Sequence record: AP018399.1
DNA: 64,000 bases
Reading direction: 5' to 3' (one strand)
Under the pieces are notes generated by a model. That model worked only from the letters and a program-made list of their open reading frames with translations. It made no database searches and was not told the origin of the DNA. Below are positions 5,182 to 53,424 of the stretch, piece after piece. The position numbers and the translations under genes are program-made. Positions within the stretch are counted from its first letter, which is position 1; each line of letters starts with the position of its first letter.

Positions 5182-5182
5182 T
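5153..5182 (+). promoter_or_regulatory. sigma70-type promoter embedded in 3' end of paralogue 3
   Basis: TTGACT-18-TATAAT. Confidence 0.6.
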
Positions 5183-5212
5183 TATGGTCATGTATTTTGT
5201 GGATGACTATCT

Positions 5213-5925: not shown

Positions 5926-5937
5926 TGGTGGTATAAT
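5909..5937 (+). promoter_or_regulatory. sigma70-type promoter
   Basis: TTGCAG-17-TATAAT with extended TG. Confidence 0.7.
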
Positions 5938-5963
5938 TAGCGCCTCAATTTGAGGAATTAATT

Positions 5964-6365
5964 ATGTTTTTGATTCGCAATTTGTTTAAGAAGAAGGAAC
6001 CTGTGGCTCCTGTGTTCTCTGAGGACACTATGCGACTGGCTCGCCATATTGAGTCTCATGGGTTCGATATTCGCAGTGTCAACAATGAAACCTACCATGC
6101 GGGCTGTGGCGGCGAATTGCCGACTCCGGGCTACCGCGATATCAACATTCAGTTGTCGGACACCACGAGCATCATGGCTCGCGTGTTGAGGGGTGGTAGG
6201 GAAATCCGCGTATTCGGTCGTGTCAAGTCTCCGACTGATGATTTGGTGGCCGCTAGCGTCCCGCACGAAGCCTTCTCTGCCGAGTTCGTGGGTAAGGTTG
6301 CTGATATGGTTCGTAACCGTGCATCGCTGCGTGCTGCGGCTCTGGTCAATGAAATGGCCCTCTGA
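5964..6365 (+). CDS. hypothetical protein (lacks array motif)
   Basis: GAGG RBS, 133 aa. Confidence 0.75.
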   Translation: MFLIRNLFKKKEPVAPVFSEDTMRLARHIESHGFDIRSVNNETYHAGCGGELPTPGYRDINIQLSDTTSIMARVLRGGREIRVFGRVKSPTDDLVAASVPHEAFSAEFVGKVADMVRNRASLRAAALVNEMAL

Positions 6366-6371
6366 TATAAT
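6343..6371 (+). promoter_or_regulatory. sigma70 extended -10 promoter (leaderless)
   Basis: TGaTATAAT; ATG 6 nt downstream. Confidence 0.65.
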
Positions 6372-6377
6372 TCAGTC

Positions 6378-6764
6378 ATGGAATTCATTAAAAAGCCTCT
6401 CAAAGCAGCCATTCAGTTGGTCAGCACGGTCGATTTCCATGCTGATGACGTGAAGATTGCCAATGTGCGTACCAAACGCATTCAGAGAGCGTTCCATGAG
6501 TTCGGAATGTCTTTCCCCACCAGTTACAATGGCAATGAGACTTATTGTGTCTTGCTGGGGGAAATGCCTGACCTGATTAAGCTGACCTTGAAGGTCAAAC
6601 CAATCAATCGTTACTTTGCTCTGGTTGAGAACAACCGAGAGCATCGGTTTATGGTTGTTGGCGAATGGGATTGGCGTCCTGACAAGGATACGATTCCGCT
6701 TCGCCGTGACCAGCTACACGAAGAGGTCATGGAATTCATCAATGATTATTCGGATTTGGATTAA
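6378..6764 (+). CDS. array paralogue 6
   Basis: EEVMEFINDY. Confidence 0.8.
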   Translation: MEFIKKPLKAAIQLVSTVDFHADDVKIANVRTKRIQRAFHEFGMSFPTSYNGNETYCVLLGEMPDLIKLTLKVKPINRYFALVENNREHRFMVVGEWDWRPDKDTIPLRRDQLHEEVMEFINDYSDLD

Positions 6765-7177
6765 TGTTTAATTTGCCTCCTGATGCGGACGTAACCCTTC
6801 GTTTGTTGCCCGATACTGGAATCAAGACCATGTATTACAAGAACACTCCCCGTAATACCTCGTTCGATGAGGCTGATGTTCCTGTCGCCAAGATGCGCTT
6901 CAACAAGATGCGTGGCTATTTCTACCTATTCCATGACAAGGTAGGTGGTACCCGTGCTTCCCGCGATGGTGAGCTTTATTCCTGCGTGGTCAATGACGTG
7001 CGCTTGGGTATGTTCTTCCGCAGTGATGGAACTGGATTCTACTTGCAAATTGGCGAGGAATCGTTTGATTTTGAGACGCAAGATAATTGGGTCCATAGCG
7101 ACGTTGAAGTTGTCGGTCGTAATTTTCCAATTATTGAAGAATTCATGGAGTTTATTGCAGACTACTACGAATTGTGA
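6764..7177 (+). CDS. array paralogue 7
   Basis: MRFNKMRGYF; EEFMEFIADY. Confidence 0.8.
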   Translation: MFNLPPDADVTLRLLPDTGIKTMYYKNTPRNTSFDEADVPVAKMRFNKMRGYFYLFHDKVGGTRASRDGELYSCVVNDVRLGMFFRSDGTGFYLQIGEESFDFETQDNWVHSDVEVVGRNFPIIEEFMEFIADYYEL

Positions 7178-7183
7178 TACGAT
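7155..7183 (+). promoter_or_regulatory. sigma70-type promoter embedded in 3' end of paralogue 7
   Basis: TTGCAG-17-TACGAT with extended TG. Confidence 0.6.
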
Positions 7184-7208
7184 ATCGGTCTAGTAAAGGA
7201 TTAATTCT

Positions 7209-7598
7209 GTGGCCGATTTGATTAGTAGTCGTGATAAACTAATTGATTTCGTAGAACGTCTGGAATATGACGCGGATAAGGTGTCTTGCACATTTAATCG
7301 CAATCCACCAGACCGGGATTATTACGGAAAGCTGGAATTCTATTACGACGATTTCCGAATTGAAGTGAGTTTTTACGTCAATCAGGATAAGCCTTCACAG
7401 AATAGTGCAATTGGCGTCAAGTTCAATAGCCATGATGGGCATCGGGAAGTATTTCTTTCCAGTGTGTCCGATAGTTTGGCGGTATTCTCTCCGGCATTTC
7501 ACAAGAAGGTTGCCGCATGGGCCAGCGAGGCAATGGGCCTGAATGAGCCGGATGACGACGAAGACTGGTTCGTTAGCAAAATAGGTGTTGTTTCCTGA
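7209..7598 (+). CDS. hypothetical protein (lacks array motif)
   Basis: AAGGA RBS, GTG start. Confidence 0.75.
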   Translation: MADLISSRDKLIDFVERLEYDADKVSCTFNRNPPDRDYYGKLEFYYDDFRIEVSFYVNQDKPSQNSAIGVKFNSHDGHREVFLSSVSDSLAVFSPAFHKKVAAWASEAMGLNEPDDDEDWFVSKIGVVS

Positions 7599-7616
7599 CA
7601 ATAGCGATGTTATAAT
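7588..7616 (+). promoter_or_regulatory. sigma70 extended -10 promoter (leaderless)
   Basis: TTGTTT-17-TATAAT with TG; ATG 6 nt downstream. Confidence 0.65.
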
Positions 7617-7622
7617 CATCGC

Positions 7623-8102
7623 ATGTCAAAGCAATCCAACTTCAAGGTTCGTACCGAGCAGTCTGTCCCGACTGACGCCATTGTCATTTCTGCGGAAGAC
7701 GCTCAGGTTTTCATCAATCGACTCGCCCGTATCACTGTAACGATGGACTTCCTGTTTTGGGAGTACCAGCACCAGAAGAACCGGGGCGACACTGACGTGG
7801 GTGTCATTGGCGGCAACATTCGCTTCATCAATGGGCTGGCCCATGAAGTGGATATGTACCACGTCGATGGCGAGCGCATCGGCTCATTCTCGTGGCTTTC
7901 TACTGACTACCAATACTTCCTTGGCGCTGCTATGGAGCTTGGTGATGAATACTACGAGGGCAAGTATGTCGTGGACATGCTAAAGCCCATTGAATCGTAC
8001 ACGTTCGCTCTCAAGACGCAGGAACGCTATCCGCTGGAAGAATTGTTCGGGGAGTTCATGGAATTCCTTGAAGACTACAACATGGCTCCGGTTCTCAAGT
8101 GA
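7623..8102 (+). CDS. array paralogue 8
   Basis: ERYPLEELFGEFMEFLEDY. Confidence 0.8.
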   Translation: MSKQSNFKVRTEQSVPTDAIVISAEDAQVFINRLARITVTMDFLFWEYQHQKNRGDTDVGVIGGNIRFINGLAHEVDMYHVDGERIGSFSWLSTDYQYFLGAAMELGDEYYEGKYVVDMLKPIESYTFALKTQERYPLEELFGEFMEFLEDYNMAPVLK

Positions 8103-8485
8103 ACATTTACCTGTACGACCATCTTGACCGAGAAGACTTCCACGTCATGTGGCATCGCTTCCGTCGCCTGTTGACCCACATGGGGTTCAATATGTCGTGG
8201 GCGAGTGATAGCGGGCGTCAGGTCTATGAAACCAAGACGCGGACGTTTGGTGACACGGAATACAAATTCGAAACGTGGAACGAACAGGGGTTGATGGATA
8301 TCGACACCATGAAGTTCTCTACCGGTGATTACCATTTCCATGTTTCAAACCAAGAACAGTGCGTGGACGTTGAATTGCGTCGCGAATGCCGTAACAACGA
8401 AGTGTTCCCCATCATGCCGTACCGTGACGAAGCGGAATTCATTTCCGAATTCCATGAGTTCCTAGACGACTACCTACCAGAATGA
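8099..8485 (+). CDS. array paralogue 9
   Basis: HRFRRLLTHM; SEFHEFLDDY. Confidence 0.8.
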   Translation: MNIYLYDHLDREDFHVMWHRFRRLLTHMGFNMSWASDSGRQVYETKTRTFGDTEYKFETWNEQGLMDIDTMKFSTGDYHFHVSNQEQCVDVELRRECRNNEVFPIMPYRDEAEFISEFHEFLDDYLPE

Positions 8486-8868
8486 CCACCTACTACCTTC
8501 CCAACCTGCTGTCAATCGAAGACTACCAAGTCATGGCGACTCGTTTCCATCGCATCATCAATGCGATGCCTGAGTTTGCAGAGAAGAAGACCCGTGGCGA
8601 CAGCCGTCACATGGTTCGCTACCGCAAGGACGGCCTGACGGTCATCTTCCGTCGCAAGAACGACATGCGTACCCGCTACGAAATTCAAATTGATTGCAAG
8701 GGCGGTCGGGATATCTTTTACGTCTACGACTACAACACGCCCCACGAGTTCATTCTGGCCTTCTGTAAGGCCAAGGTAGACGCCATTGATGAATCGTTGC
8801 TAAAGGGTGAAGTTCTGGATTTCATTGACGACTATTGTACGCTCAATGAAGTTGACTTGGAGAAATAG
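8482..8868 (+). CDS. array paralogue 10
   Basis: TRFHRIINAM; GEVLDFIDDY. Confidence 0.8.
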   Translation: MTTYYLPNLLSIEDYQVMATRFHRIINAMPEFAEKKTRGDSRHMVRYRKDGLTVIFRRKNDMRTRYEIQIDCKGGRDIFYVYDYNTPHEFILAFCKAKVDAIDESLLKGEVLDFIDDYCTLNEVDLEK

Positions 8869-8880
8869 GTGTTCTATAAT
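8852..8880 (+). promoter_or_regulatory. sigma70-type promoter
   Basis: TTGACT-17-TATAAT. Confidence 0.75.
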
Positions 8881-8902
8881 TGTCGGAAATTAAGGACCGA
8901 CA

Positions 8903-9340
8903 ATGACGTGTGACAGAGCCTTGGCTGAAAGATTGATTGAAATCACCAGTAAGCCGCTTCAAAATTATTCCCTAAAGCATATCGTTACGGGCCGTGACCC
9001 GTATTACGGATATCCGGATGATGAGTACAGCTTGCGCACGTTCGTCTGGGACATTTCTCCCAGAAAGCGTCTGGTGCTGAACATCAAGGATGACCCAACT
9101 CTGGCACCTAACGACCAAGATGTGTATAAGCTTGGCGTTGTTTACCATTTCCGTGGAATTCCTTTCTTCCGAAGAGCATTGGCCCATCATACTTTCCCGA
9201 AGTCTGTCCTTTCGACTCTGTGCCAGTTTGCTTATGATGGTATTACCGAGTTCGCGGTAAGGGATAAAGCCCTTGCGGCACGGTACGATGCCCAGCGTGC
9301 CCAAGAAGCCTGCCAACAAGCCCTACGACGCCTAGCCTAA
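8903..9340 (+). CDS. hypothetical protein (lacks array motif)
   Basis: AAGGA RBS, 145 aa. Confidence 0.75.
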   Translation: MTCDRALAERLIEITSKPLQNYSLKHIVTGRDPYYGYPDDEYSLRTFVWDISPRKRLVLNIKDDPTLAPNDQDVYKLGVVYHFRGIPFFRRALAHHTFPKSVLSTLCQFAYDGITEFAVRDKALAARYDAQRAQEACQQALRRLA

Positions 9341-9801
9341 TGCTCCTACGTGATATTAAATTGGATACCAGTGTGCTTAGCGATAAGCTGATGGACTACC
9401 ATGTCCAGATGCAACGCGCTGCTGGTCTATTCCATCTATGCCTGAACCAACCTATCATGCGGAAAGGGGCGCACATGGTCATGTCCAAGCGTGGCCGTAC
9501 CCTGACCATTACCACCCGTCTCTATCATTTCTTTGAAGAGGGTGACCCTGACTACGATTCATGTAGTGTGGAAATGCTGGCGACGGACGGTGTTCGCTTT
9601 TTGACGTTGAATTTGCTGGGTCAAAGTTTTGAGCTTGCTGATTTCTATCGACCAAGCCACAATATCTCGGCAAAGGATTACGAATTCATCATTGCCGCTA
9701 CGGCACTACCGACGTATGTCCGTCCGTGGTGTGAACATCGTGGCGACAAGCGACACATCATGGGCGAAATCCATGATTTTCTTGAAGATTATGCACTATG
9801 A
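9340..9801 (+). CDS. array paralogue 11
   Basis: GEIHDFLEDY. Confidence 0.8.
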   Translation: MLLRDIKLDTSVLSDKLMDYHVQMQRAAGLFHLCLNQPIMRKGAHMVMSKRGRTLTITTRLYHFFEEGDPDYDSCSVEMLATDGVRFLTLNLLGQSFELADFYRPSHNISAKDYEFIIAATALPTYVRPWCEHRGDKRHIMGEIHDFLEDYAL

Positions 9802-34823: not shown

Positions 34824-35001
34824 TGTCTAGTTCCTGTCTGATTTTCTTAATTGATTTACCATTCTTGGTCAGTTCGACCGAAATGGTGATGGTACTGCTA
34901 TTGTCCGAAGACTGCAACAGGGTGATACGACCCTGTTGCATGAGTTCCTTCACAGTACGATACATTTCCAATTGCTTTGAATCGTCGTCTGAAAGAGCCA
35001 T
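34804..35001 (-). CDS. hypothetical protein
   Basis: TAATG-coupled to acb1-like gene. Confidence 0.65.
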   Translation of the reverse strand: MALSDDDSKQLEMYRTVKELMQQGRITLLQSSDNSSTITISVELTKNGKSIKKIRQELDSGYGYR

Positions 35002-35573
35002 TATTTATCGTCCTCTTTCTTCTCGTCGTCCTTGTCATCGCTGGCATCCTTGGCCCAATCAAGGTTGAGGGGTTCGTAATACTCTTCGGCGATTTCAATC
35101 TTGTCGATGTGTTCCTTAATGTCGAAGTCCTTTGGAATCTGCCAGTCTTCGCCCACGTCGTAACACAGGGTTGCATGAATCTTGTATTCATCGTAGTCGT
35201 ACTGTGCCCCGTATTCCTTGTTGAAATACTCGTGACGTTCCTTCATTTCCGGACAGTCGAAGCGCAGCACTAGAGCGCGACTACCAGACTGCGTAGGGAA
35301 GATTTCAAGCTTGGTTGGAGTACCAATCCAAGGCTCTTTCATCTTACCGTGGATGGTGAAGTCCTTGAACGGCTTGCGACTGTACACGATGGTGCAGTGC
35401 ATCTTCTTACGTTCGACACGGTTTTCCTTCGAAATACCCAGAGTTTCCGCTAGCTTGGCTAGCTTGTTCTGAGTGGCCTTTGAAAAGTGTACCGCAATGT
35501 ATGTTCCGTCTTTGCCGAGTTCGGTGATTCGTGTTTCCTTCTCAAGCAAAATTTCTGCCAAATGTCTACCCAT
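35001..35573 (-). CDS. acb1: 2H phosphodiesterase, Acb1/T4 57B-like anti-CBASS nuclease
   Basis: GxYxAxxFS, HCTIVYSR, GAxxDxDxYxxHATLCYDVG, EYYEPLNLDWA match T4 57B as I recall it. Confidence 0.82.
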   Translation of the reverse strand: MGRHLAEILLEKETRITELGKDGTYIAVHFSKATQNKLAKLAETLGISKENRVERKKMHCTIVYSRKPFKDFTIHGKMKEPWIGTPTKLEIFPTQSGSRALVLRFDCPEMKERHEYFNKEYGAQYDYDEYKIHATLCYDVGEDWQIPKDFDIKEHIDKIEIAEEYYEPLNLDWAKDASDDKDDEKKEDDK

Positions 35574-38891: not shown

Positions 38892-38928
38892 CACCCCGTA
38901 TGTTAGTCATACGGGGTGTCATTGTCAA
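38892..38928 (-). promoter_or_regulatory. sigma70 promoter overlapped by 11-bp inverted repeat
   Basis: TTGACA-17-TAACAT; CACCCCGTATG/CATACGGGGTG. Confidence 0.65.
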
Positions 38929-38943
38929 TCAATGAATTGTTAT

Positions 38944-39384
38944 TTAGATGGCTGGCGGGCCGTCTGGTTTCGGATTTGTTATCATACCCCAAGCTTTCCG
39001 GAAGGTTGGAAATGCATCCGTCCCCTTATCCTTGATGATTTCAACAAACAAAGCCGTTCCCAATTTCATTGTTTCAAACTTATTCTTCCGTACTTCATCC
39101 GTTCCAATGTAGTCTTCCAGTTGGTTCGGAGTCTTGGTGATGTTGTAAAGGTGAATCATTACGTTGGAACACCTTACGTCTACTGCTTTTACGATGTGCG
39201 CTTGAATGTAAGGGTCCGGGACTGGAACCGTACTACCAAACTTGATATCACCTACACAGAATTGAGCTTGCTCATACGCTGATTCGAACTCTGTGTGAAA
39301 CTCATCATCAGTTAGGCGTGCTGCTGTTGCCGAACCTAGAACCCCAAACATCAAAACCAACGCTAGTAGCAGTCTCATTGTCAC
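38944..39384 (-). CDS. exported hypothetical protein
   Basis: signal peptide ending ATA-A. Confidence 0.7.
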   Translation of the reverse strand: MTMRLLLALVLMFGVLGSATAARLTDDEFHTEFESAYEQAQFCVGDIKFGSTVPVPDPYIQAHIVKAVDVRCSNVMIHLYNITKTPNQLEDYIGTDEVRKNKFETMKLGTALFVEIIKDKGTDAFPTFRKAWGMITNPKPDGPPAI

Positions 39385-39962
39385 TCCGGTAGATAATTCA
39401 GTACATCATAAAGATTATCTATCACGTCGAAATTCGGGGTGAGCGCATTGTGCCAAACCTTGTTCCAAGGCTGAGAGTACAGCAGCGTGTGCTTGACTCG
39501 GCCCGAACCCATCATGGCTGTACAGTGGTCGTAACGGTCGTCCACGAACAGGGCAATGTTCTCAATGTGGCGAGTCACCCGTTCCTTGCATTCGAACAGA
39601 GGGACGATGTTGATACGGTCGTAGGACACGTAATGGTCGTCCAGCCACTTCTTGGTAATGTCGTAGGCACCCGGACACCAACCACGGGCCGTCACAAATT
39701 CAACGTTGTATCCGCGAGCTTTGAGGATGGCAGTGACTTCAATCAGACCATCATGAGGCTTCATCAATGCAAGTGAATTGTCTGCGATGAATAGTTCACT
39801 CAACTGGTCGCTGGTGATGCCGTAGCGGTCCTTGGCATTGTAGTCCGTCCAGTCATTCCAACTGATTTCGGGGTTGCCTGTCTCTCTACGGTAGATTTCC
39901 TGTAGGCGACTTTTCAGGTCGCCCACAGTATCATCAATGTCAAAAATTACAGTCTGTGTCAT
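39381..39962 (-). CDS. HAD-superfamily phosphatase/nucleotidase
   Basis: IFDIDDTV, VTAR, FVDD, PWN. Confidence 0.85.
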   Translation of the reverse strand: MTQTVIFDIDDTVGDLKSRLQEIYRRETGNPEISWNDWTDYNAKDRYGITSDQLSELFIADNSLALMKPHDGLIEVTAILKARGYNVEFVTARGWCPGAYDITKKWLDDHYVSYDRINIVPLFECKERVTRHIENIALFVDDRYDHCTAMMGSGRVKHTLLYSQPWNKVWHNALTPNFDVIDNLYDVLNYLPE

Positions 39963-40222
39963 AGTGGTCCGTGAATGGCCTCATACTGACGACGCTGTTC
40001 AGCGAAGTAAGCGATGGTGGCCGGGTTGTCTGAATCGCCGATACCGAAGCACGGCTTCGTCTTACCATCTAGCATGGCTTCGATGAAGTCAGCAGCATCG
40101 GAAGCAACCTTGTCCGCAGACGGGTTGCCACTCTTATCCACATGGAATTTTACGTCTACGACTCCACGTTCCTTGAGTCGTTCGCTCAGGGCGTCCAGTC
40201 GTGCTTTCAGTTCGGTATTCAT
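39959..40222 (-). CDS. hypothetical protein
   Basis: AAGGA RBS, ATGA overlap. Confidence 0.7.
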   Translation of the reverse strand: MNTELKARLDALSERLKERGVVDVKFHVDKSGNPSADKVASDAADFIEAMLDGKTKPCFGIGDSDNPATIAYFAEQRRQYEAIHGPL

Positions 40223-40231
40223 ATAAGTTCC

Positions 40232-40834
40232 TTAAACTAGACCGCGTTCTAGCTGCTCGCGTTCGGCATCTAGGTCACGGTTGTCTGCGAAGTAGCTGCT
40301 GAACTTGTCTGGATAGCGGACAATCAGCTTGTTCACCACGTTGGTCAAACCGGTGTAGTAGTCCAGCTTCAATTCGTCGTTGATGATGGCGACGTACCAA
40401 GCGGCGTCCGACACTTCTTCCTGAATGTTCACGGCGTCAATTGCCTCGCCAGCAACACCCTTGTTCAGTACCGCAGCCAGTTCGCCAGCTTCGGTCACGA
40501 AGCCAAGCAGGCCGTGTAGAACACGCGGGTTCATGCTGATGCTATCGGTCAACGATTCGGCCGTAACGCCCTCACTTAGAATTGCAGTGGCTTCCTGTAG
40601 GATGCCATTGAAATGGGCGAGCTTGGTGGTCAGCTTTTCACTCTTGCCGTAGAACAACTGCTTCTTGAAGCCGTCTAGGATTTCAGCCGTTGCGATTGCA
40701 GCCGAGATAGCCGCCACGAATGCACGAGCATTGGTGCGTAGTGCTGGCGGTAGCGATTCCGTTCTTAGGGCGAGCGGAATGAACTTCTCAAATGAATCTG
40801 CATCGGCTCTGGTAATTAGTTTTGTATCTGTCAT
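40232..40834 (-). CDS. MazG-like NTP pyrophosphohydrolase
   Basis: LHGLLGxxTEAGEL...EEVSDxxWY...NKLxxRYP. Confidence 0.75.
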   Translation of the reverse strand: MTDTKLITRADADSFEKFIPLALRTESLPPALRTNARAFVAAISAAIATAEILDGFKKQLFYGKSEKLTTKLAHFNGILQEATAILSEGVTAESLTDSISMNPRVLHGLLGFVTEAGELAAVLNKGVAGEAIDAVNIQEEVSDAAWYVAIINDELKLDYYTGLTNVVNKLIVRYPDKFSSYFADNRDLDAEREQLERGLV

Positions 40835-40835
40835 T

Positions 40836-41021
40836 TTAGTCCTTAAGGTCGAAGTTCTTGAGTTTGTCAGTTGAATTTATGGTTCCACACTTCGGGCACT
40901 TACCCTGTGACCCGACTAGCTTGGCGTCACACCCACCGCACCAGAACTTGTCCTTGTCGGACACAGAATGGCTCTTGATGCGATTCTCTTTCTTGATGCG
41001 GTAGGTGTATTCGTCGGTCAT
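40836..41021 (-). CDS. small zinc-ribbon protein
   Basis: WCGGCD...KCPKCG. Confidence 0.7.
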   Translation of the reverse strand: MTDEYTYRIKKENRIKSHSVSDKDKFWCGGCDAKLVGSQGKCPKCGTINSTDKLKNFDLKD

Positions 41022-42232
41022 AGGCGAGTATCTAGCGTGTTCTCTTCTTCAATCTCAAACAGCAAGTTCTTCGCAATTGTATCATATTTGGTTTCGAAGT
41101 CAACGTCGTTCCAGTTCAGCTTGAGCATTTCCTTGCCCAGCTTGTATTCGTGGTGCGACAGCTTGCGCTTCTTGCCAACACGCTTCTTGCGGACCAATTC
41201 TTTAAGCTTCTCTTCACGCTGGTAGTCGTAGCCGTAAATGATTCGCAGGTAGTCCTTGTTGCGAACCTTCATGCAGTGAACGGCATCCGTCGCAGCCGGG
41301 TCCACCGGCTTAATCATGATGCCTTCGTAGCCATTGACGACCAGCATGTCAAGGAACTCAGCCACTTCAACAACCTGTTCCGGCGTCACCAGAAGACCGG
41401 TACGCTCAATTGGAACGGGATTCTTGTAGTTGACCGTCGTGTACTTCAAGTAAGTATTCGCCAGCCAACCATCGTCAACGTTGAACGTACCGTCTTCGAA
41501 GTCGATGCGCAGAATGTCGAATGCCTTGAACTCAATCTGACCATCACGAGCGTACAAGCGAAGCTGCTGCTCGTACAGTTCCAAGTCGTTGCGTTCCTGC
41601 TGAATGCTGTACTTCTCTACGGCGTCGAAATTGACGTAGGTTTCGTAGCGAGGGTACTTCTTCTGCAAGTCCTTCTTCGACATACCGGCCTGAGAGTCGG
41701 TGATGAAGTCGATAGCGTTCTGGCTGTTCTGGACAGCCTTGCGGGCTTCGTCCAGACCATACTTCTCAAGGAAGTCCACTTCCGCGTTGACACAGGTCAA
41801 CAGACCTTCGAACTCGCGGTCAATCAGACTTCCACCGATGGCCTTCCACGGTAGCAGTTCGCCGTCAAGGATGATAGCGTTCGCGCGAGATTCCACTTCG
41901 GTTTCGATACCGTCGAAGATGAACATCCAGTCGGCGAAGACGTGGCTCAAGTCCAGCTTAATCTTGTAACCGTTACGCGACACGGCGAAGCACTTCTCCG
42001 GCTCATCGCGGAACAAGTACAACTGGCAACGCGAACCCATCCACTTCGGCTGAATGTGGAGTGCAGGAACACCCTTCTCGGCGAAGTAGGCCATCGCCTT
42101 CTCAAGCGATTCGATATCGTCGTAATCATGATTACTCTCGGCAGGCGACACCGTACCTGACACGTACTTGATGCCGTCGTTCTTGAGCCACTTGATGCGG
42201 CGATTGATTTTGTTCTGTAGTGCGAAATCCAT
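41018..42232 (-). CDS. stand-alone Pnkp-type RNA ligase (adenylyltransferase) module
   Basis: TVSP, KWMGSR (motif I), LDGELLPW, FDIL, EGIMIKP, KVRxxDYLRIIYG, LDTRL; ATG 42232. Confidence 0.85.
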   Translation of the reverse strand: MDFALQNKINRRIKWLKNDGIKYVSGTVSPAESNHDYDDIESLEKAMAYFAEKGVPALHIQPKWMGSRCQLYLFRDEPEKCFAVSRNGYKIKLDLSHVFADWMFIFDGIETEVESRANAIILDGELLPWKAIGGSLIDREFEGLLTCVNAEVDFLEKYGLDEARKAVQNSQNAIDFITDSQAGMSKKDLQKKYPRYETYVNFDAVEKYSIQQERNDLELYEQQLRLYARDGQIEFKAFDILRIDFEDGTFNVDDGWLANTYLKYTTVNYKNPVPIERTGLLVTPEQVVEVAEFLDMLVVNGYEGIMIKPVDPAATDAVHCMKVRNKDYLRIIYGYDYQREEKLKELVRKKRVGKKRKLSHHEYKLGKEMLKLNWNDVDFETKYDTIAKNLLFEIEEENTLDTRL

Positions 42233-42234
42233 GT

Positions 42235-43524
42235 TTAATCCTTGGTGATGATGCAGCCCTGAGCCATCGAAATGTCGTTCACTTGGTCGCCAACACCGAA
42301 GTCGCGCACCGTGAACTGACCGCCGACTTCTGCTAGGCATTCAGCGATGAACGTCTGGAATTCCTGACGGTCAAGCTCAAAGTGGTGGTCGTCGTGACGG
42401 AACGGTCCACCCATCGTTGTGTAGAACTGGTTGAACGTGACATTCGGCGTGCTGATAAGCAGCTTGCGGAAGTTACGCTTTGCCAGCTTGATAACCAATT
42501 CCTTGGCATCGGCCAGCGGCATGTGTTCAATGACTTCAATACAAATGATATCGTGCAGACCATCCATCTGTACTTCGTCAATGTGGTTCACCACAGCCGC
42601 ATTGTGCTGATGACGTTCCACCAGCTTGTAGCCAAGCTTGTCGGTGATTTCCTTGTCAATGTCAACACCCACAATGTTGTGACCCTTGTCCTTTAGCTTC
42701 TTGGCGTAAGGCAACACGTAGTCACCGCCACCGCAGCCAACGTCCAGAATGTCACAGTCGAATGCCCCGATGTGCTTGTCTACCCATGCCTTACGCTGCT
42801 GCTGGGTGTTACCAAATTCCAAGTACATTTTGCCGTCGCTGCTGTTCTTGCCTAGCTCCTGCTCCAAGTCCTTGTAGAACGACTGCTTGATAAGCACGTT
42901 CTTCTTGAACCAGTACCACAGGAAGTATGGGCTACGAAGTTCCTGCATGATGCCGACAACCTTACCAATCATACCTTCCATGAACACAATGTCCGACGCA
43001 TACAGGTCAGCGTGCATGAGGTAGAACAGCAGGTAGACCTTCATCATGAATTCGTTGAAGGTACCATCGCTGTGAATGTGGATATCGTACAGCGCCATGC
43101 TGTTCGTTTCCGACTTCTTGGTCAGCGTGTACAATCCCGGCTGGATGAACTCGCACAGGTGATGGAACGTCTTCTCAGTGCGAAGCTGGACGTTCGGAAT
43201 GCGGATTTGATGGACGACACCGCTGTACGGCTGATTCTCGTCCAGCTTCAACACCTGATTGAACAGGGTCGTCATCGCCTGAAACACGAAGTACGTACTT
43301 GCATACTGTGTCAGGTCGAGATAGTTCTTGCCGTCTTCGTTGGAGAAGCTATTCTCGCTTGAAGTTTCACGGAACCACAGTGCGTACTTCTGGGCATCGC
43401 CATTCGGGTACCAACCCGACAGGACACCAGAACGCATTGATTTGATGGTCATTCCACCGGCCGGATTCTTCTTCAAGTAGTGCGAGAAGTTCGGGTCGGT
43501 CGATTCGATAAGCATTACTGCCAT
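42235..43524 (-). CDS. hen1: Hen1 RNA 3'-terminal 2'-O-methyltransferase
   Basis: N-terminal YLKKNP (cf. YLLHKHP), QQR, LDVGCGGG, EVIEHM, STPNxxFN, FRHDDHHFE, GVG. Confidence 0.88.
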   Translation of the reverse strand: MAVMLIESTDPNFSHYLKKNPAGGMTIKSMRSGVLSGWYPNGDAQKYALWFRETSSENSFSNEDGKNYLDLTQYASTYFVFQAMTTLFNQVLKLDENQPYSGVVHQIRIPNVQLRTEKTFHHLCEFIQPGLYTLTKKSETNSMALYDIHIHSDGTFNEFMMKVYLLFYLMHADLYASDIVFMEGMIGKVVGIMQELRSPYFLWYWFKKNVLIKQSFYKDLEQELGKNSSDGKMYLEFGNTQQQRKAWVDKHIGAFDCDILDVGCGGGDYVLPYAKKLKDKGHNIVGVDIDKEITDKLGYKLVERHQHNAAVVNHIDEVQMDGLHDIICIEVIEHMPLADAKELVIKLAKRNFRKLLISTPNVTFNQFYTTMGGPFRHDDHHFELDRQEFQTFIAECLAEVGGQFTVRDFGVGDQVNDISMAQGCIITKD

Positions 43525-43542
43525 TGTTTTAGTCCTAATGAA

Positions 43543-43580
43543 AACGCCGATAGTGTATCAGACTACCGGCGTCAAAGCAA
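43543..43580 (-). promoter_or_regulatory. sigma70 promoter within a hairpin, upstream of hen1
   Basis: TTGCTT-17-TACACT; ACGCCG(A)TAG/CTACCGGCGT arms. Confidence 0.55.
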
Positions 43581-43597
43581 GCTATAATTTTTACAGC

Positions 43598-44092
43598 TTA
43601 GGTGTTATCGACGTGGATAATCTCGTCAAAGCCTTCCTCGCGGGTCGGCTCCACATAGTTATCACGCATCGACTTGATGACGTGGCCGGGGATGCTCTTG
43701 CCAGTCGTGTCCGCACGATTCTTCAAGCGATAGCGATGCACGTCCGGGTCGGCCGTAACAACGACCGCCTTCTTGATGTATTCCTTCGGGAAACGGGACA
43801 GGATGCTCTTGCGCTTGCCCGGAGCCATGTTCGTCTGATTCCAGATGATGTTCTCGCGGTTCTTGATGGCTTCGGTCACTTCCGAATCCATGCGCTTCAT
43901 AGCAAGCTTCGAAGCAGAATCGAACACATCCGAATAGGTCTTACCCTGCTCAGCCGCGATGGCTTCAATGATGGCGTCCGACGAAGCGACGTGCCACTTC
44001 TGGCCCGGATTCTGCTTCATGAACTGGTCAATCCAGTAGTCCTTGCCGGAACCCGGCAGGCCCACCATGACAATAAGTTGAGGCTGGTTCAT
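43598..44092 (-). CDS. polynucleotide kinase-like P-loop kinase (AAA_33)
   Basis: LIVMVGLPGSGK, SSD, QTN, RxxxR. Confidence 0.85.
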   Translation of the reverse strand: MNQPQLIVMVGLPGSGKDYWIDQFMKQNPGQKWHVASSDAIIEAIAAEQGKTYSDVFDSASKLAMKRMDSEVTEAIKNRENIIWNQTNMAPGKRKSILSRFPKEYIKKAVVVTADPDVHRYRLKNRADTTGKSIPGHVIKSMRDNYVEPTREEGFDEIIHVDNT

Positions 44093-44107
44093 ATGTCTTC
44101 CAATAAA

Positions 44108-44146
44108 ATGAGCCGGTATTATAACCGGCTCATCTTAGTGCGTCAA
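44108..44146 (-). promoter_or_regulatory. sigma70 promoter with -10 forming the loop of a terminator hairpin
   Basis: TTGACG-17-TATAAT; ATGAGCCGGT/ACCGGCTCAT then T tract. Confidence 0.75.
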
Positions 44147-44153
44147 GTTGAAC

Positions 44154-44708
44154 TTACGCTTTGAAAGCGCGATAGGTCAACGAGATACGAGGACCGCAAG
44201 GACGGTCGTGCTTCGGAATCCTGTGCCAGTGGGTGTGCTGCATCCCGGCTTCCATGATGAACAAGGAACCATTACCCAACATCACCTTCTCCACGTCATC
44301 AGCGGTGCCACCGAAAGGCTTGCACCAAATCTCACGTTCGGCACCGACCGACACAACCGCAATCGGACGGGTGTGGTCGATGGATTCTGCATCGTCGGCG
44401 TGCCAGCCCAAAGCCTGACGTTCGCCTTCGTAGTAGTTCATGAAGCACAGTTCGTATGTATCGAACCCTTCCATCGCAGCAATGCGGTCACCGATTTCCT
44501 TGACATACGCATCCATCGGAGTCGGCGTGTAGGTACGCGCAAACTCGCCCGAACCGTAGGTGTACGGGTCAGTTACCGTGGCGAAGAACAGTTCGCGACG
44601 TGCGCTTGTCCTGTCCAGCCAATCCATGTTGCTAAAGTATTTGAAGTCTTCCTCCGGCGACGCCAAGAAATTGGCGTAATACTTCACCGGACTTTTAAAC
44701 GTATTCAT
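44154..44708 (-). CDS. alkB: AlkB-family 2OG-Fe(II) dioxygenase
   Basis: NYY, GWHADD (HxD), VSVGAER, GSLFIM, HRIPK, RISLTYR. Confidence 0.9.
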   Translation of the reverse strand: MNTFKSPVKYYANFLASPEEDFKYFSNMDWLDRTSARRELFFATVTDPYTYGSGEFARTYTPTPMDAYVKEIGDRIAAMEGFDTYELCFMNYYEGERQALGWHADDAESIDHTRPIAVVSVGAEREIWCKPFGGTADDVEKVMLGNGSLFIMEAGMQHTHWHRIPKHDRPCGPRISLTYRAFKA

Positions 44709-44980
44709 AAATCGTCTACACTCCACAGTGTAATTTCGTCGTCATCCCCACTGTTAGGTTTTGCAGGGTCAACGAGCGTCAATGTAATTTTGTAGCCTCG
44801 CTCATCGCGATATCCGTTGGGCATGGTCGGGGAGAATTCAACTTTCACCTTCGACACAAGGTTCGGCCCTTCGGGGTTCAGAGCAACCGTATTTTTGTAC
44901 TTGTACCGCAGTTCGATACGTTGGTTCAGGTACTTCTTTTCGATTGCCTGCTTGACTACCTTGGCTATTTCGTCTCGCAT
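44705..44980 (-). CDS. hypothetical protein
   Basis: AGGAG RBS, ATGA overlap. Confidence 0.7.
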   Translation of the reverse strand: MRDEIAKVVKQAIEKKYLNQRIELRYKYKNTVALNPEGPNLVSKVKVEFSPTMPNGYRDERGYKITLTLVDPAKPNSGDDDEITLWSVDDL

Positions 44981-45495
44981 AACTTGCTCCTGTAGATAGT
45001 CATCTTTGCCTTCCCGACCTTCTTCCGGTATTCCAGTTCCAAGAACGGGAAGTCCAGAAGGTGGGAGTTGGGTCGGATGACGACCAGCCTATTTGTTTGA
45101 GCCGCCACGTTCCAAAAGAAATTGTGACGGTACGATTCGGGAATGATATCCACCATGTAGGAACAGATGACCGTATCGAAATGTTCGTCGGTCGGCAGTC
45201 CCTTCATGGCAACGTCTTCGAAGCTGGCTTCGTAACAGAGGAAGCCGGTTTCGTCCCGGTAGCGCTGGGCCATGTACTTATCCAATCCAGTTAGATAGTA
45301 CGGGCCTCGCTGCTTGAGAATCTTGGTTATCAGACCATCGCCACAGCCAAGGTCAAGAATGCTTTCACCGCTCTGGAAGGAGCAAAAGTTTAAGCACTGC
45401 TCAACGTACAAAGCATGAGGGTTGGCGTACTCCTGAGAATGATTCTCATAGAACTTGCCAACCCCTTCGCTTCGATAGCCGTCCGATATGCCCAT
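44965..45495 (-). CDS. class I SAM-dependent methyltransferase
   Basis: ILDLGCGDG, GLD, FDTVICSY; TTGACA-17-TATAAT at 45503-45531. Confidence 0.85.
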   Translation of the reverse strand: MGISDGYRSEGVGKFYENHSQEYANPHALYVEQCLNFCSFQSGESILDLGCGDGLITKILKQRGPYYLTGLDKYMAQRYRDETGFLCYEASFEDVAMKGLPTDEHFDTVICSYMVDIIPESYRHNFFWNVAAQTNRLVVIRPNSHLLDFPFLELEYRKKVGKAKMTIYRSKLCETK

Positions 45496-47316: not shown

Positions 47317-48729
47317 TCAAGCGAAGCTTGCGTCCACGCGGGCACGAACTTCGGCAAGGGTCGGAACGTTGAACAGTTCGCCGTTGCGGTAGACAACCTG
47401 CAACACTTCTTCCTGTTCGTCCGTCTTGTCGGCGATGCGGATGGTCTTGTACTCGCCGTTCTCACGAACCAGAGTGATGCGACCGCGCTTCGAATTCTTC
47501 TTGGCGTCCGTCTTCGGCTGCTTGAACACGTCGATTTCGCGACCATCAACCGTAGTCGAACTGCACTTCATCGCCGCCTGTAGCGTATCGCGGTCGATAT
47601 CGGCCTGTAGCAGCTTGCCGCCCATGCCGAACACGATGTTGGTTGCGCTAATCTTGCGAGCTTCCAGATTCGCAAGAATCTGGTGGATGCTGCGCTCATT
47701 CACACCATCGCCCTGAATCACACGGACATACGGAGGAAGAACCTTGTAGCCCTTGCTGTTAACGGTGACTTCATCAGCCAGACCTTCCATCAGCATTTCA
47801 ATTACTTCAACCGGAACCTTGGTCGGGTCGCCACTGTCCGGACGGAGAACCACGCGGGCACCCGAAGCCTTGACCTTGGCAAGCAGACCACCTTCCAACC
47901 AAATGTTCTTGACTGCGCCGTAGGTATCGTAGCTGTCGATGACGCAAGCGAAGATTCCATTCTTGGCGTAGGTGTTAATCATGTTGTCGAACGAATCCTT
48001 CTCGCCATCAACTTCCCACGAGGTCACAGTGCTGTGTTCCATCGCTGGAATCGAAAAGCCAGCCATCGGCTCGCTGTAGTAGCGACGTGCGGCCAGAATG
48101 CCCGGAACGTTGTCGGTACCCTTGAAGACGGCCAGATGAGCCAGACCACCAATCGCAGCCGATTCGGTGCTGCTGACGCCACGGAAACCGAAGTCGTTCA
48201 GCATGAAGCCGATATCAGCTTCCGGAGTATCCGAAGTCAGGTTCAGGTAGTGCGTGCAGATTTCGCGGATGGTGTACGAAATGGTACCCACAGTCGCCGG
48301 ATACCACACGGCCGGAAGGATGACGGTTTCCATGAAGCTGGTCAGCCAGTAGCATTCCGGGTCAGTGTTCTCGACAGTGACGAGAGCGTTCTGAATCGGG
48401 ATGACCAGACCTTCCGGAGCGGCCTTGATTTCCAGCGGCAGGTAGCCGTTGTGCTTGTCCAGAATGTAATCCCAGCCAGCGCGATTGAACGGCTCGCCAT
48501 GCGCAGTGATGATGGCTTCCATTTCGTCAACCATTTCGACGGTGACGGGCTTGGACAGGATGTTCTGTAGAATGATGGTGAAACCGACGTTCAACGTCTT
48601 GGTGAACTTGTCGCTTCCACGGAATTCGACGTAAGAGAAGATGCTTTCGGTGCCCGGACGGTACTGCGCGAACTGGCTGTACTTGTAGCTGTCGGCGAGC
48701 AAAGCTGTGAGAAAAATGTTGTTGTTCAT
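47317..48729 (-). CDS. nadV: nicotinamide phosphoribosyltransferase
   Basis: ADSYKxSQ, DFGxRG, GTD, EHS, DSYD, RPDSG, QGDG, FGMGG, KSxRG. Confidence 0.93.
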   Translation of the reverse strand: MNNNIFLTALLADSYKYSQFAQYRPGTESIFSYVEFRGSDKFTKTLNVGFTIILQNILSKPVTVEMVDEMEAIITAHGEPFNRAGWDYILDKHNGYLPLEIKAAPEGLVIPIQNALVTVENTDPECYWLTSFMETVILPAVWYPATVGTISYTIREICTHYLNLTSDTPEADIGFMLNDFGFRGVSSTESAAIGGLAHLAVFKGTDNVPGILAARRYYSEPMAGFSIPAMEHSTVTSWEVDGEKDSFDNMINTYAKNGIFACVIDSYDTYGAVKNIWLEGGLLAKVKASGARVVLRPDSGDPTKVPVEVIEMLMEGLADEVTVNSKGYKVLPPYVRVIQGDGVNERSIHQILANLEARKISATNIVFGMGGKLLQADIDRDTLQAAMKCSSTTVDGREIDVFKQPKTDAKKNSKRGRITLVRENGEYKTIRIADKTDEQEEVLQVVYRNGELFNVPTLAEVRARVDASFA

Positions 48730-50845: not shown

Positions 50846-51012
50846 TAGTCTAGAATCCCTGAAATGATATCACCAGCCAAATCGACAATGCTGTCAATGA
50901 TGATGAAATCTGCGGCAGCATCGGCGACTTCACCAACAACGCTACCAGCGGTTGTCTTGCTTGCAGCTTCTTGCTGCTTCCTTTTCTTTTCGGCTTCAAC
51001 TTGTGCGTTCAT
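50845..51012 (-). CDS. small hypothetical protein
   Basis: ATG 51012; TAATG-coupled downstream. Confidence 0.55.
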   Translation of the reverse strand: MNAQVEAEKKRKQQEAASKTTAGSVVGEVADAAADFIIIDSIVDLAGDIISGILD

Positions 51013-51583
51013 CTTCTTTCCTAATTGCGTCACGGACGCGCATCAAACATTTGCCGAGTAGGTTCTGCCCCTTCCAGTTGTTCGGGTCCAGAATCGCCGG
51101 ATGCTTATCGACACCCATTGCGATACCCCATACCTTGTCGTAAGGCGATGCCTCAACAATGGTGCGGTCGCCAGTGTCCAGAAGAATCTTCTTGAGTTCG
51201 GCATCCTGCGTGAACTTCTGGTAGAGAATCTTGTCTACTACCCACTCGCGTTCGGCGACCCACTCTTCTTCGTTGTAGTTACGAACGCCACGGCCTAGCG
51301 CCTTCTGTTCACCCGGCTTCTTCGACTTGAGAATCTTGTCGGCAGCTTCATGGTCACCAAACAGACGAGCCTTGCAGAACATCATAGCCTGCTCGGAACA
51401 GTTGAACTCGTGGCGCTTACGAAGTTCACCTTCGTTGTAGCCCATCGTGAACTTGGCCGGATGCCAGTTGGAGAACGGACCAGCCCAGAAGAACACGTAG
51501 TCGTCCGTGGCAAAATGGCCCGGAACTGACTGGTCGTAGATATGCCGTAGGTCGGCGAATTCAAGTGCAGCGTGCTTGCTCAT
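50996..51583 (-). CDS. NADAR (YbiA-like) ADP-ribosyl/N-glycosidase
   Basis: FSNW, SEQxMMxxKAxLFGD, KALGR, KFxQ, LLxTG, EASPYDxxWGI, GQNLLG. Confidence 0.92.
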   Translation of the reverse strand: MSKHAALEFADLRHIYDQSVPGHFATDDYVFFWAGPFSNWHPAKFTMGYNEGELRKRHEFNCSEQAMMFCKARLFGDHEAADKILKSKKPGEQKALGRGVRNYNEEEWVAEREWVVDKILYQKFTQDAELKKILLDTGDRTIVEASPYDKVWGIAMGVDKHPAILDPNNWKGQNLLGKCLMRVRDAIRKEDERTS

Positions 51584-52320: not shown

Positions 52321-53424
52321 TTATAGGCGGTTGGCAAACCACTTGATGATATGCCAATGGTCCTCAAACAATTCCGAACGCATTTCGTTCAGAACCACGT
52401 CGATAGGAATCCAACGTGCCAGTGCAGCATCGTCCTGCCCCGTGACACGCGGAAGCTTTTCCTTGTCGTCCAACTTGAAGCCGAAGGCCATTGTTACCGT
52501 GCGACCCTTGCGAGCCTTGATGCGGCAACGTAGCGACCGGTTCGGATGGTCGAATACGTTCTCGGCGAAGACGCTACCACGAAGAACCTTTTCAGGAACC
52601 TTCAAGCCAGTCTCTTCACGCAGTTCGCGAATCGCACCTTCAAGGAAGCGTTCGTTGTTGTTCAGGTGACCACCCGGAACGGCCCACAGCCCCTTACCCG
52701 GAGAATGACCACGCTGTACCAACAGAACGTGACCCGACTGGAACACCACAGCATCCGAAGTGAGGAAGTTGGTGTTGCCGTATGGAGCGTTTTCGAACTG
52801 CTTGTCGTACTTGATGCCTTCATCGTATTCGAAGCGAAGGGCAGCGTATTCCGGCGTCTTCATGAACTTCACGAGGAAGTCGTAGGTACCCGGAGTCACA
52901 GCCGGTTCGATGAACTTGACGTAGCCTTCCAGATACAGTTCGCGAATCTTGGTAGCCGACAGAGCGTGCGAATGGTCATCGCCCACCTTGATTTCATGCA
53001 TCGGCAGGATATCGAACGATTCCTTGAAGTAATCAAGGTAGTAGGTCGATTCGTCCTTGTTCAATGCCATGATGGCGACAGACTCATCCGAGTCGAAGTT
53101 GGCAAACGCCACTTCGCGAATCAGGCGGCTCACGTTGGTGAACCAGTCCGAATCGGAGTAGAGGTAGTCTTCTGCACCCACGAAGACGATGCGCTGCTGC
53201 AAATCAAGCGGCAGAGACGCAAGCACCATTTCCATACGCTCTTGCGTAGTGAAAGGATTCTTAATCGTGCGGGGTTCATTGTGGCTTCCGAGGACCATCA
53301 GAACCTTGCGGCCGTGGTTGAAAGCGTTGAGAAGTGTTTCGATATGACCCACATGAGGCGGCTCAAGACGGCCGAGGAAGGTCACCAAATCGTACTGCGG
53401 TGTGTTATTAGTTTTAGCGTTCAT
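52321..53424 (-). CDS. nadM: bifunctional NMN adenylyltransferase / Nudix ADP-ribose pyrophosphatase
   Basis: GRxxPPHxGH, NPFTxxER, SATxIR; Nudix PGGx5ExxxxGAxRELxEETG, DD. Confidence 0.93.
   Translation of the reverse strand: MNAKTNNTPQYDLVTFLGRLEPPHVGHIETLLNAFNHGRKVLMVLGSHNEPRTIKNPFTTQERMEMVLASLPLDLQQRIVFVGAEDYLYSDSDWFTNVSRLIREVAFANFDSDESVAIMALNKDESTYYLDYFKESFDILPMHEIKVGDDHSHALSATKIRELYLEGYVKFIEPAVTPGTYDFLVKFMKTPEYAALRFEYDEGIKYDKQFENAPYGNTNFLTSDAVVFQSGHVLLVQRGHSPGKGLWAVPGGHLNNNERFLEGAIRELREETGLKVPEKVLRGSVFAENVFDHPNRSLRCRIKARKGRTVTMAFGFKLDDKEKLPRVTGQDDAALARWIPIDVVLNEMRSELFEDHWHIIKWFANRL

Follow-up and report, generated by a model that had tools for sequence, protein, structure and literature searches.

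Enzymes that cleave tRNA are a recurrent form of bacterial anti-phage defence, and the polynucleotide kinase-phosphatase (Pnkp) and RNA ligase Rnl1 of phage T4 are the textbook counter to them. The closest described relative of the locus analysed here is the Pnkp1-Rnl-Hen1 system of Capnocytophaga gingivalis, reconstituted in 2015, in which Pnkp1 unites a T4-Pnkp-like kinase with a HAD phosphatase and Rnl is a separate equivalent of the Pnkp ligase domain (PMC4411300). Repair of colicin-cut tRNA in vitro needs Pnkp1, Rnl and Hen1 together, the proteins assemble as a heterohexamer, and methylation dependent on S-adenosylmethionine (SAM) makes the repaired junction resistant to colicin D (PMC4411300). 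Our subject is a group of genes in a window of 64,000 nucleotides, bases 62001-126000 of AP018399.1, from Xanthomonas phage XacN1, a jumbo myovirus of Xanthomonas citri with a genome of 384,670 bp. Window bases 39381-44800 match record positions 101381-106800 with 100% identity. Three adjacent open reading frames (ORFs) encode a kinase (ORF199), a full-length Hen1 (ORF198) and a stand-alone ligase (ORF197), and the locus is a real, rare, phage-borne, kinase-only relative of the known repair-and-methylate system.

The genome paper of XacN1 (2018) named ORF197 'PNKP', recognised ORF198 as a Hen1 homologue and saw in the pair a likely tRNA repair function; it does not mention that ORF197 corresponds to no more than the ligase module (PMC5852040). 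Because the core biochemistry is known from bacteria and the gene pair had been flagged in that paper, the practical gain of the present analysis is modest. What is new is the kinase-only form, the lack of a recognisable phosphatase and the finding that Hen1 and the ligase form a variable cassette. Domain identities, motifs, synteny and distribution are reported below as observed.

Ligase, Hen1 and kinase of the XacN1 locus

The six ORFs singled out by the initial annotation all lie on the minus strand at the positions it had given (Table 1), and their strong family matches are so far beyond chance that the gene assignments are confirmed. In GenBank, ORF199 is named a predicted kinase, ORF198 a methyltransferase and ORF195 MazG, and ORF194 precedes ORF193. 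The label 'metallophosphoesterase' attached there to ORF197 is wrong and represents an annotation carry-over; the protein is the Pnkp ligase module only.

In a search against solved structures, residues 8-404 of ORF197 align end to end with residues 6-394 of the Capnocytophaga Rnl, CgiRnl (4XRU_B, E = 5e-39), and the ligase domain of Clostridium thermocellum Pnkp (CthPnkp) is matched at 1e-15 only. The reading frame is open back to position 42340, and the CgiRnl alignment favours a start at 42232. The motif I lysine (K63, in 'KWMGS') and the other nucleotidyltransferase motifs are invariant among four distinct phage homologue sequences. ORF197 is thus a stand-alone Rnl homologous to the Pnkp ligase domain, and because it matches the Rnl of the published Pnkp1-Rnl-Hen1 complex, its architecture is a known one. 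Of the split system described by the initial annotation, the modular architecture stands and the novelty of a stand-alone ligase does not.

The Hen1_N match of ORF198 spans the entire model and is followed by the methyltransferase domain. Among solved structures its best match is Hen1 from the Pnkp1-Rnl-Hen1 complex (4XRP_C, 3.7e-29), and the protein corresponds to CgiHen1 over its full length. The SAM-binding motif LDVGCGxG and the metal-binding motifs EVIEH and FRHDDHHF are likewise invariant in four distinct phage homologue sequences. As read from its sequence, ORF198 is an N-terminal ligase-activating domain joined to an RNA 3'-terminal 2'-O-methyltransferase, and it has both the Hen1 N-domain and the C-terminal metal-dependent 2'-O-methyltransferase that characterise the Hen1 of the Capnocytophaga system.

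What kind of kinase is ORF199? As a single sequence it gives weak matches to T4 Pnk (3.8e-5) and Pnkp1 (1.3e-3), and it matches PHROG 505, 'polynucleotide kinase', at 6e-14. A profile of the ORF199 family (24 members) finds Pnkp1 (4XRP_A) as its best solved-structure match at 2.5e-16. The tRNA kinase PSTK ranks second, ahead of T4 Pnk, fungal RNA 5'-OH kinases, mammalian PNKP and the CthPnk domain, and nucleotide kinases appear near 1e-3 only. A profile of 33 Pnkp1-type kinase domains, from which ORF199 was left out, matches ORF199 over its full length at 1e-11. The AlphaFold2 (AF2) model of ORF199, with a predicted local distance difference test score (pLDDT) of 92.9, has polynucleotide or RNA 5'-OH kinases as its top Foldseek matches. 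The P-loop GLPGSGK, the S-S-D motif containing the catalytic Asp and the lid arginines (R...R) align with those of Pnkp1, Listeria-type Pnkp and T4 Pnk, so that the P-loop, catalytic Asp and lid arginines of a polynucleotide 5'-kinase are all present; within the family, G11, K17, D39 and R126 do not vary and R122 hardly does.

The genomic company of ORF199 homologues in other phages is also informative. Homologues that are 35-38% identical lie under or beside 'RNA ligase' features in roseophages and a Rhodobacter phage, and under 'polyA polymerase' features in Campylobacter and Sinorhizobium phages. In Ruegeria phage RpAliso, a kinase-only gene (36.5% identical to ORF199) comes directly after a T4 Rnl1-type ligase gene and overlaps its end; the PNKP-type HAD (PF25109, 1.7e-29) is a protein of its own, 208 aa long and encoded about 2.5 kb upstream of the kinase. 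We consider ORF199 a probable RNA 5'-OH polynucleotide kinase, Pnkp1-like and kinase only; no phosphatase domain was found in ORF199, which thus differs from the kinase-HAD fusion of Pnkp1. As parts of the system, then, Hen1 and Rnl are sure and the kinase is probable.

Set against the 851-position model of bacterial Pnkp, the kinase covers positions 8-155 and the ligase 484-826, and positions 156-483 remain uncovered. The phosphatase region of the model thus has no counterpart. Neither the Pnkp nor the Hen1 equivalog cut-off of NCBIfam (TIGR04075, TIGR04074) is reached (89.8 versus 750 bits for Pnkp, 61.8 versus 340 bits for Hen1). The initial annotation was right, in sum, to see here a phage-borne modular relative of Pnkp-Hen1, in which kinase, full-length Hen1 and ligase are separate proteins, all with intact catalytic motifs.

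A variable cassette in a conserved gene row

Of 50,697 phage records searched by tblastn, 5 carry Hen1 or Rnl, and in each of these the two genes are adjacent. The records are XacN1, Stenotrophomonas phages RAS14 and CM1, and Vibrio phages RYC and vB_VpaM_sm033. For a wider survey, IMG/VR, one genome per GTDB species and metagenome contigs were scanned with conserved Hen1 peptides, and the loci recovered were annotated with profiles; Hen1 and Rnl lie close together in each of the 13 full-length IMG/VR loci with sufficient contig extent. A HAD gene of the ORF193 type was found beside them at no locus outside the clade of XacN1.

The gene order of RAS14 is that of XacN1, namely kinase, Hen1, Rnl, MazG and, further on, HAD. 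Xanthomonas phage Xoo-sp13 retains the HAD (64% identity) and the kinase (58%) in the order AlkB, kinase, MazG, a 171-aa ORF and HAD, with 117 bp between kinase and MazG and without Hen1 and Rnl. Three metagenomic relatives (L085, L086 and L087) also keep AlkB, kinase, MazG and HAD, and the cassette is absent from them. In a fourth (L084) the cassette occupies the position that it has in XacN1, and Rnl is followed there by a 59-aa ORF in the place of the zinc ribbon; the zinc ribbon (ORF196) travels with the cassette in XacN1 and L084 and is absent from RAS14. The conserved row is thus AlkB, kinase, MazG, HAD and rhodanese, and because relatives keep kinase, MazG and HAD without Hen1-Rnl, we regard Hen1-Rnl as a variable cassette within it. 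The presence of kinase, MazG and HAD is not tied to the cassette, and the MazG-like ORF195 is probably a conserved-backbone neighbour, outside the repair system.

The initial annotation had placed the MazG and HAD genes in one run with the repair genes. Their common direction is correct: all genes between the promoter-like site upstream of the kinase and the terminator-like hairpin after ORF192 point the same way, and successive genes overlap or lie a few bases apart, except for the 73 nt between kinase and Hen1; ORF196 overlaps the stop of the ligase gene by 4 nt. Both sites are consensus matches, the total number of which is not above chance. Membership of MazG and HAD in the system does not follow, as they are kept in four relatives without Hen1-Rnl.

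Carriers of the cassette form a small jumbo-phage clade consisting of XacN1, RAS14, CM1 and one 326-kb contig. The scans of IMG/VR, GTDB and metagenomes gave no further members of this clade except a near-identical 7.4-kb contig. On this environmental contig (L088, JACCDJ010765419.1) Hen1 is 100% identical to that of XacN1, and the interval between MazG and HAD is about 1.2 kb versus about 0.3 kb in XacN1, which suggests an insertion or deletion within the backbone. In a quick Hen1 tree, rooted on the classical Pnkp-Hen1 loci, the proteins of XacN1, L084 and RAS14 form a clade of their own (Shimodaira-Hasegawa-like approximate likelihood ratio test, SH-aLRT, 99), outside both the Flavobacterium/Dysgonomonas clade of Pnkp1-type loci and the Vibrio-phage clade; no grouping of the XacN1 Hen1 with the Hen1 of Pnkp1-encoding loci was found in this tree. 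Several branches are long, so the deeper placement of the XacN1 clade is unsure.

The healing modules of Hen1-Rnl systems have been repeatedly swapped, fused and lost. About 30 Flavobacterium species, as well as Dysgonomonas and Niabella, have Hen1, Rnl and Pnkp1 (kinase plus HAD_PNKP) in a single operon. In Listeria sensu lato (L025-L034) and several viral contigs, the gene after Hen1 encodes kinase, metallophosphatase and ligase in one protein of about 850 aa; one locus (L013) is of this Listeria type with the kinase split off, and another (L019) has a kinase-phosphatase apart from Rnl. In two large phage contigs (L020 and L022) no healing gene lies within 8 kb of Hen1 and Rnl, and the intervening ORFs of these two have no informative Pfam match. 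Hen1 stands alone in 11 long metagenome contigs, as published for Capnocytophaga. The Hen1 and ligase of environmental Listeria outscore the stand-alone proteins of Flavobacterium on the phage Hen1 and Rnl profiles, so that the distinction between fused and split forms does not track the Hen1 tree cleanly. The Vibrio phages RYC and vB_VpaM_sm033 and one contig (L018) encode a stand-alone Rnl followed by a Hen1-kinase-HAD fusion of 709-726 aa, annotated merely as 'polynucleotide kinase' in their records. No description of this triple-fusion architecture was found in the literature searched, and an earlier RNA repair survey may contain such phage architectures.

The 3'-phosphatase step and competing explanations

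With moderate confidence we favour the explanation that Hen1 and Rnl are the two-gene core of a repair-and-methylate system of the Pnkp1-Rnl-Hen1 kind, served by the kinase ORF199 and by a phosphatase acting in trans, and inserted in a backbone to which the MazG and HAD genes belong. A host ribotoxin or anticodon nuclease would cut a tRNA of the host or of the phage, which has 56 of its own, and the ends so produced would carry a 5'-OH and a 2',3'-cyclic phosphate. ORF199 would phosphorylate the 5' end, and the 3' end would be dephosphorylated by some phage or host enzyme, which must come in trans because no recognisable Pnkp-type module exists in the locus or in the XacN1 genome. Hen1 would then methylate the terminal 2'-OH, Rnl, switched on by the Hen1 N-domain, would seal the break, and the 2'-O-methyl junction would resist a second cut. 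The MazG-like and HAD genes would constitute a conserved nucleotide-metabolism backbone, outside the cassette. If this reading is true, Hen1 takes the phage beyond mere repair, as the repaired tRNA would be immune to the same nuclease, and Hen1-based repair together with a full set of phage tRNAs would provide two protective layers for translation.

In the search for the missing phosphatase, all XacN1 ORFs from 50 aa upwards were compared, with filters off, with a 33-sequence HAD_PNKP profile and with a profile of the Pnkp-type metallophosphatase built from 15 fusion proteins, and neither gave a match below E = 0.1. A hidden Pnkp-type metallophosphatase was therefore rejected. Across bases 1-322000 of XacN1, beyond which the 66-kb terminal repeat recurs, metallophosphoesterase motifs are confined to ORF293, ORF383 and the Mre11-like ORF305. 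None of these lies in the window, in agreement with the initial annotation, which had seen no calcineurin-like phosphatase in it. The scans of IMG/VR, GTDB genomes and metagenome contigs revealed no new phosphatase beside an XacN1-type Hen1. The form of XacN1, without a recognisable phosphatase, is therefore a defined place to seek a new RNA 3'-end healing activity.

XacN1 has a large toolkit for RNA ends, which includes the PF09414 ligases ORF121 and ORF260, an RlaP nucleotidyltransferase, a CCA-adding enzyme and two copies of Thg1. One copy of this tRNA-His guanylyltransferase lies in the window (Table 1), and the other is in the second terminal-repeat copy according to the genome paper (PMC5852040). 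ORF260 (AP018399.1, 150606-151256, outside the window) was considered as a 2H enzyme on account of its GenBank name, '2'-5' RNA ligase', and rejected, the protein being a PF09414 ATP-dependent RNA ligase domain.

Several points weigh against the explanation that we favour. The activities, the target RNA, complex formation and the biological role that it presumes are carried over by homology from reconstituted bacterial complexes, and as described it is an incomplete repair pathway, lacking a dedicated phosphatase. The kinase and Hen1 genes of L084 are not neighbours, three unrelated ORFs lying between them. An arginine three residues past the catalytic Asp (R38 of T4 Pnk) is essential in T4 Pnk; it is conserved in the kinases of Pnkp1 and Listeria-type Pnkp, and is replaced by I or L in XacN1, RAS14, Xoo-sp13 and RpAliso. 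The kinase is, moreover, retained by relatives without Hen1 and Rnl. That it serves the other RNA ligases of XacN1 in Xoo-sp13 was rejected, since homologues of neither ORF121 nor ORF260 were found in that phage. Retention without Hen1-Rnl and the lack of these two homologues in Xoo-sp13 together mean that the kinase may have another main role.

These observations bear most directly on the possibility that ORF199 is part of a kinase-MazG-HAD nucleotide-metabolism row, and that the Hen1-Rnl insert relies on host healing or needs none. The three genes do stay together without Hen1-Rnl in Xoo-sp13, L085/L086 and L087, ORF199 lacks the substrate-binding Arg, and in L020 and L022 Hen1 and Rnl have neither a kinase nor a phosphatase within 8 kb. 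We nevertheless judge this unlikely, as ORF199 groups by sequence and structure with polynucleotide and tRNA kinases, its family profile matching Pnkp1 far better than nucleotide kinases, and its homologues in other phages lie under 'RNA ligase' or 'polyA polymerase' features or, in RpAliso, directly after an Rnl1-type ligase gene. We give a similarly low probability to the idea that a calcineurin-like phosphoesterase elsewhere in XacN1, ORF293 or ORF383, acts in trans as the 2',3'-phosphatase. In classical Pnkp this task falls to a metallophosphatase, both proteins have Metallophos-family signatures (Metallophos_2 in ORF293; Metallophos in ORF383, which the motif scan finds), and ORF293 is near a tRNA-related gene, two genes from peptidyl-tRNA hydrolase. 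Neither protein, however, matches the Pnkp phosphatase profile from the 15 fusion proteins at E below 1 with filters off, and neither is linked to the cassette.

The initial annotation had assigned 3' healing to the HAD protein ORF193, in the manner of T4 Pnkp, or else to a 2H enzyme. With ORF193 as the healing phosphatase, kinase, Hen1, Rnl and HAD would be one complete system. ORF193 holds all the HAD catalytic motifs, its gene sits in the same tightly packed co-directional run between the promoter-like and terminator-like sites, and RpAliso has stand-alone kinase and stand-alone HAD phosphatase genes alongside an RNA ligase. ORF193 also matches PHROG 415, labelled 'polynucleotide kinase', at 7.8e-12, and the 5'(3')-deoxyribonucleotidases, which are its structural relatives, hydrolyse 3'-nucleotides too. 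The phosphatases of Pnkp1 and T4 Pnkp are themselves HADs (PMC4411300). Nevertheless, Pfam gives for ORF193 only NT5C (1e-3; 19.5 bits, cut-off 24.8) and a general HAD model, with no match to PF25109, and the 33-sequence HAD_PNKP profile does not match it either (0.23 for the RAS14 orthologue). The RAS14 orthologue passes the NT5C cut-off (1.5e-5, 25.4 bits), and several homologues carry PF06941. Among solved structures, a 23-sequence profile of the ORF193 family finds phosphoserine phosphatase only (0.006), in an alignment that runs through the cap region. The AF2 model (pLDDT 93.5) has a helical C1 cap inserted directly after motif I; its Foldseek matches are small-molecule HADs, beta-phosphoglucomutase-like hydrolases and 5'(3')-deoxyribonucleotidases (mdN, cdN) with template modelling (TM) scores of 0.68-0.72, and the 50 best matches include neither T4 Pnkp nor Pnkp1. 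In the HAD superfamily a cap usually goes with small-molecule substrates and its lack with macromolecular ones, so the cap favours a nucleotidase. Pfam, the HAD_PNKP profile, the solved-structure profile search and the model with Foldseek thus all reject ORF193 as a T4-type phosphatase. Its gene is, besides, retained in the four relatives without Hen1 and Rnl. We regard ORF193 as a neighbour belonging to the backbone and as a weak 3' phosphatase candidate, and the complete four-gene system quite unlikely.

The 2H enzyme fares worse. The sole 2H protein of the window is ORF185, a 'hypothetical protein' in GenBank that belongs to the Acb1 family of 2H phosphodiesterases, directed against the cyclic oligonucleotide-based antiphage signalling system (CBASS), at 147 bits versus a cut-off of 27 with the whole model covered; on this ground a 2H healer was rejected. 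That ORF185 heals 2',3'-cyclic phosphate ends could be argued from its distance of about 4 kb from the cassette, and 2H enzymes do include RNA cyclic phosphodiesterases. Plus-strand genes intervene, however, and the gene is retained in relatives without Hen1-Rnl, so that we consider this role extremely improbable. A more adventurous version of the repair hypothesis, in which the 3' end is healed by an enzyme of a kind new to RNA repair, for instance ORF193 or a small unannotated cassette protein such as the zinc ribbon with a partner, and the system protects the 56 phage tRNAs as well as those of the host, seems to us quite unlikely.

Neighbouring genes and comparison with known systems

Other genes of the window are included in Table 1. 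The AlkB-like gene is the immediate upstream neighbour of the kinase in all relatives as well as in XacN1, and a small methyltransferase gene lies just past it; these two genes and the cassette may be parts of a wider nucleic-acid repair row. Three NAD genes just upstream of the repair genes look like an NAD+ reconstitution set, of the kind directed against NAD-depleting defences. On the plus strand, about a dozen successive ORFs of similar size, 100-145 aa (ORF134-146 in GenBank, each a 'predicted ORF'), look like a tandem paralogue array.

Table 1. Positions of the genes and sites discussed, in window coordinates except for the three triple fusions, which are numbered within their own loci
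Feature	Position	Strand	Basis or remarks
ORF199, P-loop kinase, probable RNA 5'-OH polynucleotide kinase	43598-44092	-	164 aa; AAA_33 3e-22
ORF198, full-length Hen1	42235-43524	-	429 aa; Hen1_N 5e-59 and SAM methyltransferase domain
ORF197, stand-alone ATP-dependent RNA ligase, Rnl type (Pnkp ligase module)	41018-42232	-	404 aa; PNKP_ligase 1.7e-30
ORF196, four-cysteine zinc ribbon	40836-41021	-	61 aa; CxxC...CxxC; weak DZR matches
ORF195, MazG-like pyrophosphatase	40232-40834	-	PHROG 229, 1.5e-43
ORF193, C1-capped HAD phosphatase, NT5C-nucleotidase-like	39381-39962	-	DxDxT, T, K and DD motifs intact
Sigma-70-like promoter match, just upstream of the kinase gene	44118-44146	-	11/12; consensus scan only
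Terminator-like hairpin after ORF192, would close the kinase-to-ORF192 gene run	38892-38918	-	consensus scan only
ORF185, Acb1 anti-CBASS family	35001-35573	-	4e-43; adjoins DHFR in every relative examined
AlkB-like dioxygenase	44154-44726	-	PHROG 21963, 3e-88
Small methyltransferase	44965-45495	-	PHROG labelled 'tRNA methyltransferase', 3e-91
Nicotinamide/nicotinate phosphoribosyltransferase	47317-48729	-	GenBank and Pfam matches in relatives' contigs
NADAR domain protein	50996-51583	-	Pfam 1.3e-52
Bifunctional NMN (nicotinamide mononucleotide) adenylyltransferase/Nudix	52321-53424	-	GenBank annotation alone
ORF134-146	about 4100-9350	+	
Thg1-like tRNA-His guanylyltransferase	303-1052	-	1.9e-31
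Triple fusion of RYC (L005)	6001-8154		Hen1_N, methyltransferase, P-loop kinase, PNKP-type HAD
Triple fusion of vB_VpaM_sm033 (L006)	5998-8178		Hen1_N, methyltransferase, P-loop kinase, PNKP-type HAD
Triple fusion of L018	8001-10130		Hen1_N, methyltransferase, P-loop kinase, PNKP-type HAD

How does the XacN1 locus compare with the systems already known? Like the pathway predicted for XacN1, T4 Pnkp with Rnl1 and its split version in roseophages such as RpAliso represent phage-encoded tRNA repair in response to anticodon nucleases. Their ligase is of the Rnl1 type, the separate HAD of RpAliso is a true PF25109 member, and in the absence of Hen1 these systems are without the methyl mark. The classical Pnkp-Hen1 systems of Clostridium thermocellum and Anabaena variabilis have a ligase module and a Hen1 homologous to those of XacN1, and their ligation depends on the Hen1 N-domain. 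Classical Pnkp is, however, a single kinase-metallophosphatase-ligase polypeptide, whereas in XacN1 kinase and ligase are separate and there is no metallophosphatase match. The systems of the two Vibrio phages and of L018 are phage-borne like that of XacN1, with adjacent Rnl and Hen1 that are about 26-34% identical to the XacN1 proteins. They differ in carrying a complete T4-like Pnkp (kinase and PF25109 HAD) at the C-terminus of Hen1, which makes them self-sufficient, whereas XacN1 is without the HAD_PNKP part.

The Pnkp1-Rnl-Hen1 system comes nearest. There are differences: Pnkp1 is a kinase-HAD fusion, whereas the XacN1 kinase is alone and no ORF of the phage gives a PNKP-type HAD match; the hen1 gene of Capnocytophaga is unlinked to rnl and pnkp1, whereas in XacN1 the three genes are adjacent and carried by a phage; and the XacN1 Hen1 clade is a separate, well-supported branch, not nested among Pnkp1-type loci. 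Nevertheless, both systems have a stand-alone Rnl and a full-length Hen1, those of the complex being the closest solved relatives of ORF197 and ORF198, and the ORF199 family likewise finds its nearest solved structure in the T4-like kinase of the complex. By analogy, the same chemistry, consisting of kinase, phosphatase, 2'-O-methylation and ligation steps, would be expected in XacN1.

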